This document shows positions 1 to 64,000 of a DNA stretch of 64,000 nt, piece by piece. The DNA is taken from NCBI GenBank assembly GCA_964019335.1, contig OZ025728.1:1-64000 (forward strand), in the 5' to 3' direction. Under the pieces are notes generated by a model. The model was not told the origin of the DNA and ran no database searches. It was given only the letters and a program-made list of their open reading frames with translations. The stretch is from Diplonema japonicum. Its lineage: Eukaryota; Protista; Euglenozoa: Diplonemea. Numbering within the stretch: the stretch's first letter is position 1; every line of letters begins with the position of its first letter. The position numbers were made by a program, and so were the translations under genes.

Positions 1-501
1 TACCTTGTACATGGGTACAAGTTGCCGCATGGCTGGTAACTTCAGCGTCACAGTTAGCGCTCGATGCGACGGCACGCCTATGTCTTCAGTAACACAGGAC
101 ACAAGCGCTGCAGCAGCTATGGGGTTCATCAGGATGTAGTCGGGTCTTGTGGCTGCAACGGCAGTAACGTAGGTGGGGCTTGGGTCCCTCCCTTGATGTT
201 TTGCAAACATCGCGGATGCGTCCCCAGCGCGTGTTAAGCGCATGTTGCAATGTAGGAGATGCATCGATTGTAGTGTTCATATCTCCAACTACAATGATCG
301 GGACCTGGCCTAGCGATATCCGCAATCGGTTTAGGCAAAGTAAGGTTTCGCGAGCAGCGACTCCAGCCTTCGACTTATCAACATCGGCGTACAGGTTAAC
401 TACGTGTAACCACCTGTTGCCTTCACCCATCGCGTACATTACATGTTGGAATCTCGTCTGCTGTCCAACATCCGGGAGGGACATGCTGTTCTATGCAGGT
501 G

Positions 502-1085
502 CCCCCCCCCCCCACCCCCCCCCCCCCCCCCCCCCCCCCCCCCCCCCCCCCCCCCCCCCCCCCCCCCCCCCCCCCCCCCCCCCCCCCCCCCCCCCCCCCC
601 CCCCCCCCCCCCCCCCCCCCCCCCCCCCCCCCCCCCCCCCCCCCCCCCCCCCCCCCCCCCCCCCCCCCCCCCCCCCCCCCCCCCCCCCCCCCCCCCCCCC
701 CCCCCCCCCCCCCCCCCCCCCCCCCCCCCCCCCCCCCCCCCCCCCCCCCCCACCCCCCCCCCCCCCCCCCCCCCCCCCCCCCCCCCCCCCCCCCCCCCCC
801 CCCCCCCCCCCCCCCCCCCCCCCCCCCCCCCCCACCCCCCCCCCCCCCCCCCCCCCCCCCCCCCCCCCCCCCCCCCCCCCCCCCCCCCCCCCCCCCCCCC
901 CCCCCCCCCCCCCCCCCCCCCCCCCCCCCCCCCCCCCCCCCCCCCCCCCCCCCCCCCCCCCCCCCCCCCCCCCCCCCCCCCCCCCCCCCCCCCCCCCCCC
1001 CCCCCCCCCCCCCCCCCCCCCCCCCCCCCCCCCCCCCCCCCCCCCCCCCCCCCCCCCCCCCCCCCCCCCCCCCCCCCCCCCCCCC
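502..1085. repeat. ~580 nt poly(C)/poly(G) homopolymer inside the APE coding region; probable sequencing or assembly artefact
   Basis: Almost pure C run. The flanking protein motifs (RGGVATLYRIP ... MSLPDVGQQTRFQH) are nearly contiguous when compared with LINE copy 2. Confidence 0.8.
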
Positions 1086-1493
1086 GGGAATACGGTATAA
1101 TGTGGCGACGCCTCCCCTCTCCGCTAAGGTTGGGGATTCAACACCGTCCAGCATCAGTCCACGTTGCGGTTTCCCAAATATGACACGCCTCTGCGTCATA
1201 CCCGGATCCCCCTTCATTGTTGTAGCCACTTGGAATTGTGTCGTAGCCGTCAGCGCCGTCTCCTGAACACACAGGATATTGGCTGTTACCTTCTTGAGGA
1301 TGTGGAATGTGTTGTTCCACGAAGTAACGTTAACCGATGTTATCGTCACTGTGTCGCACGTTTTCGCATCACCTATCGATGTCAAGGGCGGACGCGGAAC
1401 ACTACCTTTCGTGCCTTGAGGTTCTCCCGCTGGAACGTAGAAGTCCTTCCATAATCCTGTCGTCTTCACCTTGAGGGATATCTTCTTGCACGG

Positions 1494-1520
1494 CGGGCCA
1501 GGGTTGGGGTGCACATCACC
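1494..1520 (-). other. 2A-like (StopGo) peptide core GDVHPNPGP
   Basis: ALLRLLADGDVHPNPGP matches GD(V/I)ExNPGP except E->H, and lies upstream of the APE domain as in 2A-bearing LINEs such as L1Tc. Confidence 0.75.
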
Positions 1521-61560: not shown

Positions 61561-61614
61561 AAAAAAAAAAAAAATAAAAAAAAAACACACACAGAAATCT
61601 TTTTAGTTTCGCAT

Positions 61615-63231
61615 TCACCTCAAGGGCGACCCGCTAAGGGCACCCTGCGTGGCATCGCCACCCTGGTTAGCGGACAGCAGGACGCATGTCTTCGCCGCTG
61701 AAAGGGTAAACACAGCACAGTTCGACAGCGCCCTACAAGAGGAACAGCAAGCGGACGAGGTAGATCCCTTAGTGGAGGATATCACGATGTTGGCAGGAGC
61801 GTTGTAGGCGAAGTTGGAGGTGAAAGCGCATCCTTGCGGTGTGGGGGTCTGCGAGCAGTTGTGCAGCCCAAAGCTAGAGATCACAGGGGTAGGCTCGTTG
61901 GCGGCAGAGAGAGTCACATTGAAGGTGACGGTGGCAGGCCCCTGCACGTACTTCCCAAGCAACACAATTCTTTTGTGCCCAATAGCCGTTTCCGTCACTT
62001 CCACCTTTCCGTTGATGGCCACTGTGTATCCCCTCACAAGCTGCCCCTTCGTCTGGTCTTCTTTGATCACAATTCTGTCGAAGGCAGCCCCCTGCGGCAC
62101 CGTCACACTGAACATGCCTGTCTTGTTCGCCACCTGCACCACAGCGTCGTCGTAGCAGGCCCTCAGCCACGACCCGAACTCCTGGTACCTCTGCACGTGC
62201 GCAGGGAGCAGCGTGCCTGTCTGGTCAGGGGTCCAGTCCAGCAGCAGGTTGGCGTTGATGCCCACTGTGTCGTGGTAGGTCGACACCAGTGCCGACAGCG
62301 ACTTCGGCACCATGTTGGCGTTGAAGAACCAGCACCCACCGTACGGGGCACGGTCCTTCTCAGACACACCAGCGCCTGTCTGGAAGCAGGTGTCAGCCTC
62401 CGCTGGAACGAATACGGCACCGTTAGGCTCGCCCCTCGTGCAGTCGTTTACAGCGCTCGCTGTGGACCAGTAAGGGTACGAGAGGTGGCCTGACTCCGTG
62501 CCGCACCACCTCACCACGTTCTTTCCAGGACCGCCAAAGGCGACGGCGGTGGGCTGCAGCTCTTGGAGGAGCGACGCGATCTCGCTGCCCTTGTCGGAGG
62601 GGTACCCGCCGTCGAACCATACCTCTGCGAGGGGCCCGTAGTTGGTCCACAGCTGGCGGAGGTTCGCGAGGAGGATCTGGTAGTACTGGTCCTGGGTGAT
62701 CTTCGCCTGGCCGGGGATGGTGTTGGGCTGCACCTTCCCGCCAACCACGTTCAGGAAGGCGTTGTTCATTGCACCGTGGTAGAAGCCAGGACGGATACCA
62801 TACTTGTGGCAGCTGTCGACGAACTCACGGGCGATGTCACCAGCACCGTTCTTCCACGGGGAGTGCTTGATGCTGTAGTTATACACGAAATCGAACTCAG
62901 GGAAGGCAGTGTTGGAAGGGAAGGTGTTGAACCCGCACCCGTGCGACACCACCAGCACAGCGTGCTTCGCTCCGTAAGACTTGATGGCCTGGATCCACTG
63001 GTCCGTCGACACGTTGGTCGGGGCGAAGGTGGACGCTGGCGGCAGTGCGATGTAGGAAGCACCCTCTTCCGCGTTGCCCTCAAGCGTCATGGCACCAATA
63101 CCGCAGGACTGAAAGGTCCCCATGTTGAAGTGACCGATGGACGTCAGCTCATCGCTTGCCCACATCAACTGGTCCGGCGTGGGTATCGGTACCCCTAGGA
63201 CCACAGCCGCCATCAGGACGCCTTGAATCAT
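61615..63231 (-). CDS. Alpha-L-fucosidase (GH29) with C-terminal beta-sandwich and PAN/apple-like module
   Basis: GHFNMGTF, TDQW, AVLVVSHGCGF, YSIKHSPWKNGAGD, EVWFDG, VRWCGTESG, LLLDWTPD..G, IKEDQTKGQLV. Confidence 0.92.
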   Translation of the reverse strand: MIQGVLMAAVVLGVPIPTPDQLMWASDELTSIGHFNMGTFQSCGIGAMTLEGNAEEGASYIALPPASTFAPTNVSTDQWIQAIKSYGAKHAVLVVSHGCGFNTFPSNTAFPEFDFVYNYSIKHSPWKNGAGDIAREFVDSCHKYGIRPGFYHGAMNNAFLNVVGGKVQPNTIPGQAKITQDQYYQILLANLRQLWTNYGPLAEVWFDGGYPSDKGSEIASLLQELQPTAVAFGGPGKNVVRWCGTESGHLSYPYWSTASAVNDCTRGEPNGAVFVPAEADTCFQTGAGVSEKDRAPYGGCWFFNANMVPKSLSALVSTYHDTVGINANLLLDWTPDQTGTLLPAHVQRYQEFGSWLRACYDDAVVQVANKTGMFSVTVPQGAAFDRIVIKEDQTKGQLVRGYTVAINGKVEVTETAIGHKRIVLLGKYVQGPATVTFNVTLSAANEPTPVISSFGLHNCSQTPTPQGCAFTSNFAYNAPANIVISSTKGSTSSACCSSCRALSNCAVFTLSAAKTCVLLSANQGGDATQGALSGSPLR

Positions 63232-63930
63232 CTTTTTTTTTTTTTTTTTTTTTTTTTTTTTTGCTGTGCAACTTGAAATGTTTCTTTGAAAAGTTGTCAT
63301 CACAAAAAAAAAAAAAAAAAAATGAAGGAGGGCGGAAGGGGGGGAACGATTTGGTCTCACCCCGGCCGCTTTTGGTAACTGGGCATTTCCAGGGTTAATC
63401 ATATATCTTAGCTAGGTAAAAAAAAAAAAAAAAACACAGACAGGTCTGGGGGCCTATCCACCGTTATAAAATTTATATGGGAAAAAAAAAGTCCTGAAGC
63501 AGGTGGTTTCTTTTTTTTTTCCCTCTTCTTTCTTCCTTTTTTTCCCTTTTGCCGGTCCGTAGCTTCTCGACTCCTCCTGCGGGTAAAGGAATTCTAAACG
63601 CCGCTGAGGGGCGTTCTTCAGCCCACGGGGCAAGAGGCCACGCTGTTTCGAACGGAATAGGTATTATTAAAAAAAAGAAAGATAAAAAGACAGCGTACAA
63701 ATGGGGGTGCATTTTCTTTTCTATTTTACCGGTGTTTTGAAATCTCGTTCTTGGGGGAGGGAAGGAATTCTCATTTCTCACCAGTTTGCTTTTTTGAGGG
63801 AAAAAAAAAAATGAAAATGTCATGTCTATGCTAACGGATCTATGCTTCCCTTCTGTGCTGAAGGACGCATCGCGAGGGTGGACTTCACTCTGCTGGGTTG
63901 TTGTGCCCCTAGTAGGGCAAAAAAAAAATA

Positions 63931-64000
63931 ATATATGAGTTAAAGGAAGCCGGTGTTGGCGGCGCCCTGCACAAGAACTGTCTACTTGATTACAGGGGGC
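63931..64000 (-). mobile_element. 3' end of another ribozyme-SINE copy (continues beyond the window)
   Basis: 69 of 70 nt identical to 3531-3600, with a different flank. Confidence 0.9.

Follow-up and report, generated by a model that had tools for sequence, protein, structure and literature searches.

The 64,000-nucleotide stretch analysed here (the window) represents the left end of contig C81 (OZ025728.1, positions 1 to 64,000) in the 62.5-Mb assembly of Diplonema japonicum (132 contigs; GCA_964019335.1) and harbours two retroposons sharing their 3' end: (i) LINE-A, an intact long interspersed nuclear element (LINE) encoding an APE-type endonuclease and a reverse transcriptase (RT), and (ii) SINE1, a non-coding short interspersed nuclear element (SINE). 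The partnership of LINE and SINE through this common 3' end is strongly supported by sequence comparison. Taken as a whole, the reading of a ribozyme-headed LINE and a tail-sharing SINE that are co-transcribed with host units appears, on balance, to be the likely one. Genomic copies of both elements were examined as fetched loci, numbered up to L063.

The 16-mer CCTTTAACTCATATAT terminates both the 6.17-kb LINE (44913–51084) and the 313-bp non-coding element (3531–3843). Five exact copies are present in the window (3531, 9271, 42776, 44913 and 63931), all on the minus strand, compared to none in shuffled sequences. Genome-wide, 728 exact copies were found, with no match of the reversed-pattern control in 62.5 Mb. 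A preliminary description of this DNA had reported the motif at the ends of the copies at 9271, 42776 and 63931 and, in degenerate form, at 15638, which was borne out by the search of the window; two old SINE-like remnants with a variant tail can be added to its list of copies. The eight retroposon pieces of the window, all on the same strand as the genes, are as follows:

44913–51084, minus strand: LINE-A, full-length autonomous retrotransposon of the non-LTR (long terminal repeat) type, 6172 bp, recognized by its sharp 5' end, 3' end, open reading frames (ORFs) and domains
3531–3843, minus strand: SINE1, non-autonomous retroposon, 313 bp, with identical ends in 30 genomic copies
63931–64000, minus strand: second SINE1 copy, 3' part, cut by the window end
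9271–9750, minus strand: retrocopy of a spliced-leader (SL) exon (9750–9715) joined to the 3' part of the LINE (9714–9271; given as the last 480 nt)
42776–42838, minus strand: 5'-truncated LINE 3' end of 63 nt, 100 % identical to the LINE
15638–15665, minus strand: degenerate remnant of a LINE tail, ~26 nt
43028–43302, minus strand: old, decayed SINE copy of a subfamily with the tail CCTTTRTCTCTTTAT
61196–61290, minus strand: old, internally deleted SINE remnant with the variant tail CCTTTRTCTCTTTAT

The boundaries of both elements are well defined by their genomic copies. The 5' end of the LINE (GGGGCTGG) is sharp in ~26 copies, including those of subfamily B (LINE-B) with only ~79 % identity, and LINE-A and SINE both end in ...CTCATATAT. 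All 30 of 30 genomic SINE copies start with GGTGGTGGGGATAAC and end in ...CTCATATAT, followed by additional (AT)n or a T run, and are embedded in unrelated T-rich flanks. The starts at 3843 (SINE) and 51084 (LINE) in the window agree with these sharp 5' boundaries. The upstream flanks of the copies consist of T runs followed by 0–3 extra bases, and short target site duplications (TSDs) are readable where the flank is not homopolymeric, i.e., TACTTT for the window SINE and TCTATTT for the copy in L022, with T-run TSDs elsewhere. In several loci, elements are piled up head-to-tail, with a SINE or LINE tail plus T run followed by CA and then the next LINE head (minus strand: L052, 1660–2000; L056, 1660–1950; L048, about 1464–1500), looking as if the T run behind one element had been the target for the next.

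The genome contains 291 exact SINE-type tails, 265 exact LINE-type tails, about 33 candidate LINE heads and 634 matches of a 24-mer from the SINE core (≤1 mismatch). The excess of LINE-type tails over LINE heads reflects 5' truncation of the LINE, fragments of which were seen with lengths of 480, 63, ~26 and 16 nt; sampled SINE copies are full length. Classic LINE 5' truncation is thus found beside full-length SINEs. Both families are young: SINE copies diverge from their consensus by 0.6 % in the median (with six copies matching it exactly and the window copy at 3531–3843 differing by 6.8 %), and five other LINE copies are 100 % identical to the window LINE over the first 285 nt.

LINE-A had been described as intact, and inspection of its coding content agrees with this:

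49279–51036, minus strand: ORF1, 585 aa, without a Pfam family, Cys-rich C-terminus
44963–49210, minus strand: ORF2, with 2A-like GIHPNPGP, APE endonuclease, RT and a Cys/His-containing C-terminal region; stop at 44963
49184–49210, minus strand: 2A-like motif GIHPNPGP, directly before the APE domain
about 48467–49177, minus strand: APE endonuclease (Pfam Exo_endo_phos, E 4e-12)
about 46745–47383, minus strand: reverse transcriptase (Pfam RVT_1, E 2e-25)

Since the ORF1 frame is the one conserved between LINE-A and LINE-B (50 % identity vs 37–39 % in the other frames), the layout is read as ORF1 plus ORF2, and a 2034-aa frame considered as a single polyprotein was rejected. A second frame is open across all of ORF1 (~590 codons) in LINE-A (49279–51067, minus strand) as well as in LINE-B (L053, 1501–3160); its translation is of low complexity and rich in G, R, E and A. 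Judged by its sequence, GIHPNPGP is a 2A-like "StopGo" motif, a type of sequence also present in further APE-type LINEs such as L1Tc and ingi (PMC3708506), and related diplonemid LINE proteins carry NPGP near their N-termini (GDIETNPGP in P0005, GDIHPNPGP in P0010). The LINE is transcribed, since a EukProt transcriptome assembly contains a protein 100 % identical to ORF2 over residues 600–1700. Homologue searches further yielded unnamed diplonemid transcripts, two D. papillatum proteins automatically named "X-element" and distant unnamed matches, the closest named protein relatives thus being those of D. papillatum. Matches of ORF2 in the PDB were L1 ORF2p and the R2 RT (about equal), and those in the ESM Atlas were unnamed clusters. 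Membership in the ingi/L1Tc clade is recognized by APE, RT and RNase H in one ORF, the Pr77 hallmark and a poly(A) tail (PMC12278014). The LINE possesses APE and RT, but no RNase H domain was found in it with Pfam, its tail is (TA)n, its proteins are encoded by two ORFs, and its head is not common to the partner. Because of the missing Pfam RNase H and the lack of a Pr77-type head common to the partner, the LINE is not filed under ingi/L1Tc, this separation being drawn by features of domains and ends. Judged by its sequence, LINE-A, an APE-type non-LTR retrotransposon of young age, is probably active.

The heads of both elements can be folded into candidate HDV-like ribozymes, in which P1 begins with the first nucleotide of the element (all on the minus strand):

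50971–51084: HDV-like ribozyme candidate of the LINE, descriptor match with P1 at nt 1
51084–51079 and 51012–51007: LINE P1, GGGGCU/GGCCCU, G1-U78 wobble
46 nt: LINE J1/2, containing the ORF1 AUG at 51036
51032–51026 and 50977–50971: LINE P2, CUGGGGA/UCCCCAG
51025–51013: LINE P3-L3-P3', P3 ACC/GGU, L3 UCCACGU
51006–51005: LINE P1.1, GG
51003–50984: LINE P4, UCCCCUCC/GGGGGGGA
50983–50978: LINE J4/2, GCAAAC
3713–3843: HDV-like ribozyme candidate of the SINE, descriptor match with P1 at nt 1
3843–3838 and 3771–3766: SINE P1, GGUGGU/AUCACC, G1-C78
45 nt: SINE J1/2
3792–3788 and about 3717–3713: SINE P2, CUGUU/AACAG, or GUUCGCUG/CAGCAAAC (also listed as GTTCGCTG/CAGCAAAC)
3787–3772: SINE P3-L3-P3', P3 GACC/GGUC, L3 UCCUCGUC
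3765–3764: SINE P1.1, GG
about 3761–3719: SINE P4, long
C-G-A-A: SINE J4/2, in which the C at 3719 is the catalytic candidate (shifted by one nt in 3' direction in the family consensus, where an additional A is present)

The descriptor demanded a P1 of 6–7 bp starting with G, J1/2 no longer than 70 nt, P2 of 4–7 bp, P3 of 3–4 bp, L3 beginning with NCC, GG for P1.1 and C[AG]A in J4/2. Its only matches in the window, searched on both strands (128 kb), were at 51084 and 3843, shuffled sequences giving ~0.8 sites per 128 kb, and in 63 genomic loci it matched only LINE and SINE heads, with P1 always at nt 1 of the element. Both heads display the nested double pseudoknot of P1, P1.1, P2, P3 and P4 in canonical order, a CC in L3 that pairs with the GG following P1 (P1.1), and a cytosine followed by purines in J4/2. 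The L3 of the LINE is UCCACGU, compared to UCCUCGC in HDV. In both families, nt 1 of P1 is the first nucleotide of the element, and HDV ribozymes cleave directly 5' of G1, which usually forms a G-U wobble. Between LINE subfamilies A and B, P1, P2 and P3 are invariant, and four substitutions distributed over three P4 pairs all keep pairing (one C-G to U-A exchange, two wobble-compatible changes); the first 150 nt are 70–90 % identical, as compared to ~60 % for the rest of ORF1. For the SINE head, the pseudoknot-free minimum free energy structure calculated with RNAfold recovers P1, P3 and P4.

The orientation of the elements was compared with that of the host genes. Every Pfam-confirmed host gene of the window is located on the minus strand, and the window accordingly represents one unidirectional gene cluster, an organization also described for D. 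papillatum (PMC10161547):

minus strand: host genes confirmed by Pfam, i.e., Na/Pi cotransporter, tyrosinase, alpha-L-fucosidase, TRAPPC11-like protein and GT61 glycosyltransferase

On the plus strand, runs of 14–25 G (corresponding to C runs in the coding sense) are present at 22137, 31560, 34402, 34524, 51976 and 52249; they are intergenic and adjoin T runs. For the genomic copies, the coding strand of the flanks was called with a codon-usage model trained on the window genes, which called 35 of 37 chunks (1.4 kb each) correctly; it was used instead of a 5-mer strand classifier that proved too weak on 1.5-kb flanks (85 % accuracy; SINE 16/28). SINE flanks were co-oriented in 23 cases, opposed in one and undecided in four, and the flanks of LINE heads were co-oriented in 22, opposed in three and undecided in four. 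Co-orientation with host genes, as claimed for the window in the preliminary description, therefore holds genome-wide (45 vs 4, binomial P = 4e-10), random orientation being the outcome that would have spoken against it. Strand switches between neighbouring copies along contigs are likewise rare (13/86 and 7/70 pairs vs 38 and 31 expected), and a switch almost always leads from minus (left) to plus (right) along the contig (contigs C1–C32). Given co-orientation, the chromosomes look like two transcription domains diverging from an internal switch towards the ends.

On the strand of the element itself, the sites of insertion consist of T tracts. In diplonemid transcription units, pyrimidine tracts precede the trans-splice sites on the sense strand. 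Since the T-tract targets coincide with such sense-strand pyrimidine tracts, target choice alone could yield co-orientation, and the latter probably results from integration into T tracts of the sense strand; selection may add to the bias.

Several copies are joined to the SL exon, which is diplonemid-like in the window. The copy at 9271 ends in the motif as previously described, but is no plain truncation: here the SL exon is joined directly to LINE position 5721, at a junction that follows GTC, not AG. Genome-wide, the SL was found joined at nt 2–3 in two LINE heads (L036, L060) and in five SINE heads, the latter amounting to ~1 % of SINE heads. SINE copies with the SL exon at G2 are listed as L061 (1489–1830) and, by genome position, as C1:890286, C2:842511, C13:292872, C24:264928 and C33:55480; the copy in L061 is without the P3'/P1' part of the ribozyme core and has the second tail type described below. 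The base preceding G1, often A and here termed A(-1), follows a T run plus a variable base, is located outside readable TSDs and forms with G1 a pyrimidine tract plus AG acceptor, the G of which is G1. The SINE–SL junction fits splicing after this AG, whereas the LINE junctions do not fit AG cleanly. The SL-joined copies suggest that element RNAs meet the trans-splicing machinery, and they fit transcription within polycistrons of RNA polymerase II without proving it; template switching of the RT onto SL RNA provides an alternative explanation. In L063 (1489–1849, right end of C2), an SL exon is followed by a different sequence, which passes into (CCCGCAAA)n-like repeats where the contig ends, and many matches to SL+GGT lie 1–2 kb from contig ends, on the minus strand at left ends and on the plus strand at right ends.

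A number of points weigh against the ribozyme reading. No HDV-type match was obtained with Rfam, neither at E ≤ 1 in the whole window nor at E ≤ 10 in permissive 171-nt scans of both heads, and the fold energies of the heads are ordinary (z-scores between -0.2 and -0.3). Both head sequences were already known when the descriptor was composed, and only two LINE subfamilies contribute to the covariation. In the SINE, P1 is closed by G-C instead of G-U, and P2 and J4/2 can be read in two alternative ways. Moreover, A(-1) is present in 26 of 26 unspliced LINE heads, in an initiator-like context (YA|G), and in 19 of 28 SINE heads, which could point to an initiator and an RNA start located one base further upstream. 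Finally, binding of the tail by the RT is suggested from comparison only. The missing Rfam match may be explained by the 45-nt J1/2 insertion and the pseudoknot, and A(-1) could instead reflect non-templated addition by the RT. The HDV-like folds proposed earlier for both heads are upheld by structure, position and limited covariation only; Rfam and the fold z-scores lend them no support, and P2 and J4/2 of the SINE are ambiguous.

Sharp 5' ends might instead be generated by an internal promoter or initiator at or beside nt 1, with the HDV-like fold inactive or accessory and no dependence on host read-through. The invariant A(-1) of the LINE heads and the lack of both an Rfam match and special fold stability would be in line with this, and in L1Tc promoter and ribozyme reside within the same 77 nt (PMC3383444, PMC3185411), so that by analogy to Pr77 an internal promoter is possible. 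However, two heads of different sequence each carry the full double-pseudoknot signature exactly at nt 1, the bases at positions -1 and -2 vary among SINE copies, six of which abut the T run directly, and the strong co-orientation as well as the SL-joined copies fit co-transcription. The two explanations are not mutually exclusive, and promoter-driven 5' ends in place of ribozyme cleavage appear unlikely. Self-cleavage of the 5' ribozymes predicted by the structural model is considered quite likely, and it is plausible that the elements are promoterless, as stated in the preliminary description, and would be cut from host read-through transcripts.

At the other end of the elements, identity between LINE and SINE is limited to the last 17–19 nt, directly upstream of which a structurally equivalent hairpin is predicted by folding:

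44913–44951, minus strand: candidate LINE 3' recognition module, hairpin GGGGG-C-GUCU CACAA AGAC-UUCCU, then UUUAACUC and terminal (AU)n
3531–3569, minus strand: candidate SINE 3' recognition module, hairpin AGGG-C-GCCG CCAACAC CGGC-C-UCCU, then UUUAACUC and terminal (AU)n

The base of the hairpin is formed by a G run paired with UCCU of the shared motif, and the loops are CA-rich (CACAA in the LINE, CCAACAC in the SINE). The inner 4-bp stem is wholly different and yet complementary in both elements, i.e., GUCU/AGAC in the LINE and GCCG/CGGC in the SINE. In a third context with the same tail (L035), the stem is GUUU/AGAC and the loop CACAA, and in an older SINE subfamily the loop-closing pair of the tail hairpin has changed from G-C to A-U. 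The earlier view that LINE and 313-bp element are internally unrelated stands insofar as BLAST finds the tail alone; it does not apply to the P3-L3 core of the heads, which is alike in both (ACCTCC(A/T)CGT(C)GGT).

A second SINE subfamily (SINE2) has the same head and body as SINE1 and ends in ...CTTAACGCC...TAGTGTTGCAAYCAAAGCCCCA, also written CTTAACGCC(ACC)TAGTGTTGCAATCAAAGCCCCA, followed by a T run (L012, L052, L061). This tail of ~40 nt also follows the stop codon of a long ORF in L048, the protein product of which shows homology to the C-terminus of LINE-A. That one and the same SINE body occurs with two tails, and that each of these corresponds to a separate LINE, provides the strongest comparative argument for the tail being the part that the RT would recognize. 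Together with the tail counts, the compensatory hairpin and the youth of both families, this second SINE/LINE tail pair strongly supports the proposal of the preliminary description that the LINE RT mobilises the SINE via the shared tail.

Stringent LINE/SINE pairs, e.g., UnaL2/UnaSINE1 of eel, share a 3' stem-loop and a terminal short repeat recognized by the RT; the diplonemid elements likewise have a common 3' end, alongside TSDs and LINE 5' truncation. Classical SINEs possess a head derived from an RNA polymerase III (Pol III) transcript (tRNA, 5S or 7SL), instead of which the diplonemid SINE has a ribozyme-like one. No such Pol III head was found, ARAGORN predicting 0 genes and Rfam giving no match in 3531–3843, and a tRNA or Pol III origin of the SINE head was rejected on these scans. 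For this reason, "SINE" is used here loosely for a short, LINE-dependent retroposon (~320 nt) that encodes nothing.

One may consider that the short element is mobilised by another LINE and owes its 17–19-nt identity with LINE-A to common descent or convergence. The common sequence is indeed short, and the same tail is also found at the end of at least two further contexts (types L035 and L036), so that more than one autonomous element may use it. On the other hand, LINE-A is the only intact, multi-copy and near-identical autonomous element seen here with this tail, its hairpin-plus-tail architecture is matched by that of the SINE, the deviating tail of the other SINE subfamily corresponds to that of another LINE, and the LINE-A and SINE families are equally young, rendering mobilisation by another LINE distinctly improbable. 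The view that the 16-mer existed beforehand as a target or host motif and does not belong to the elements is hardly tenable, since in all cases LINE or SINE sequence adjoins it upstream and unrelated T-rich DNA downstream, flank copies without an element also lack it, and the reversed 16-mer has no match.

For the latter question, two element-free flanks were compared, in neither of which the motif occurs, contrary to what a pre-existing target at empty sites would predict: a partial duplicate (5845–5985) of the 3' flank of the copy at 9271, and Logan contigs skipping the window SINE (joint 3515->3852). The depth of this joint is ~20x that of single-copy contigs; it therefore probably represents a copy of the flank elsewhere without the SINE and not an allele. 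Directly upstream of the SINE (in gene sense), 4–5 units of ~100 nt are repeated at 4038–4568, and contig depth suggests that this flank is multi-copy in the genome. Two copies of an intergenic module of 130 nt (T run, GTGGGTGTTTAAAAACC, (TGG)n ...) are present at a distance of 3.3 kb (5845–5985 and 9143–9271), and the SL–LINE retrocopy is inserted exactly at the edge of one of them.

Based on these findings, the following course of retroposition is proposed for D. japonicum. RNA polymerase II would read through both elements from upstream, and the HDV-like self-cleaving ribozyme that each of them is predicted to carry, with its J1/2 insertion of 45–46 nt, would cut directly 5' of G1, yielding a unit-length RNA with a defined end; the sharp 5' boundaries of the genomic copies could be explained in this way. 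A few read-through RNAs would gain a spliced leader instead and also be retrocopied. The LINE RNA would end in the short hairpin, UUUAACUC and the terminal (AU)n, a module most likely bound by the element's own RT, which would initiate target-primed reverse transcription at T tracts, from a nick in their A-rich strand. Sense-strand pyrimidine tracts as targets would place new copies in the direction of host genes. The SINE may borrow this machinery through the same single-stranded tail and the equivalent hairpin, and its sister subfamily may have swapped the 3' module for the tail of a second, related LINE. Accordingly, anatomy, copy numbers, ends, tail sharing, orientation bias, youth and the LINE transcript are matters of observation in this scheme, and self-cleavage, RT–tail binding and dependence on host transcription are what we infer.

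No paper on diplonemid ribozymes or on a diplonemid LINE/SINE pair was found among the papers searched, and no description of the pair was known to the author of the preliminary description either. Among the closest known counterparts is L1Tc/NARTc (ingi/RIME) of trypanosomes with the Pr77 HDV-like ribozyme L1TcRz, for which release from polycistronic transcripts was already proposed (PMC3185411, PMC3383444, PMC4035085). Both systems reside in euglenozoan hosts with polycistronic transcription and trans-splicing and combine a LINE encoding APE and RT with a short non-autonomous partner, each with an HDV-like head proposed to free the RNA from co-transcripts; L1Tc also encodes a 2A-like NPGP peptide before the endonuclease (PMC3708506). 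They differ in that NARTc/RIME carry the first 77 nt of the LINE itself, whereas the diplonemid SINE head differs from the LINE head except for the P3-L3 core. Compared to L1Tc, the diplonemid LINE is without Pfam RNase H, has a separate ORF1 and a specific hairpin plus (TA)n instead of poly(A) as tail, J1/2 spans 45–46 nt and includes the AUG in case of the LINE, and the elements are almost always co-oriented with genes.

R2 and its non-autonomous SIDE derivatives (PMC3414825) resemble the diplonemid pair in the processing of a host co-transcript by a 5' HDV-like ribozyme (as proposed for the diplonemid elements), in non-autonomous partners that retain both ends, and in a specific 3' untranslated region, which is required for RT binding and target-primed reverse transcription in R2 (PMC3414825) and may have its counterpart in the diplonemid tail. 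However, R2 employs a restriction-like endonuclease and a single target in ribosomal DNA, as opposed to the APE-type diplonemid LINE with its dispersed insertions into T tracts, and SIDEs are derived from R2 by deletion, whereas the diplonemid SINE is no such derivative of its LINE. In Schistosoma mansoni, non-LTR retrotransposons also carry small self-cleaving ribozymes at their 5' ends, in this case twister variants (PMC8501958), i.e., another ribozyme class in another host lineage. Freeing of retrotransposon RNA from host co-transcripts by HDV-like ribozymes was experimentally shown for R2 (PMC3414825) and L1Tc/NARTc (PMC3185411, PMC3383444, PMC4035085). As judged from the sequences, new aspects of the present pair are (i) the diplonemid host, (ii) a predicted partner ribozyme that is not a copy of that of the LINE, (iii) the 45–46-nt J1/2 with the LINE start codon, (iv) the hairpin-plus-(TA)n tail, (v) an apparent exchange of tails between SINE subfamilies and (vi) near-complete co-orientation.

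The diplonemid pair is of the same kind as L1Tc/NARTc and R2/SIDE, with good but unproven candidates for 5' ribozymes. These predicted ribozymes lend themselves to biochemistry, the tail module is a candidate RT recognition signal, and two natural LINE/SINE pairs with one SINE body provide a clean setting to study RT–RNA recognition. In addition, hundreds of near-identical young copies mark transcription polarity along the chromosomes. The same logic in diplonemids, the sister lineage, suggests an early origin of this strategy within Euglenozoa and a link to genomes that are polycistronic and poor in promoters. More tentatively, and with rather less confidence, one may speculate that diplonemid retroposons are obligate passengers of polycistronic transcription, in which a fast-evolving HDV-like ribozyme of each family's own replaces the promoter, that the SINE is a cassette of ribozyme, body and exchangeable LINE tail switching LINE partners by tail swap, and that targeting of sense-strand pyrimidine tracts enforces co-orientation on the scale of chromosomes; if true, ribozyme-headed retroposition would be an ancestral trait of Euglenozoa predating the Pr77 system of kinetoplastids.

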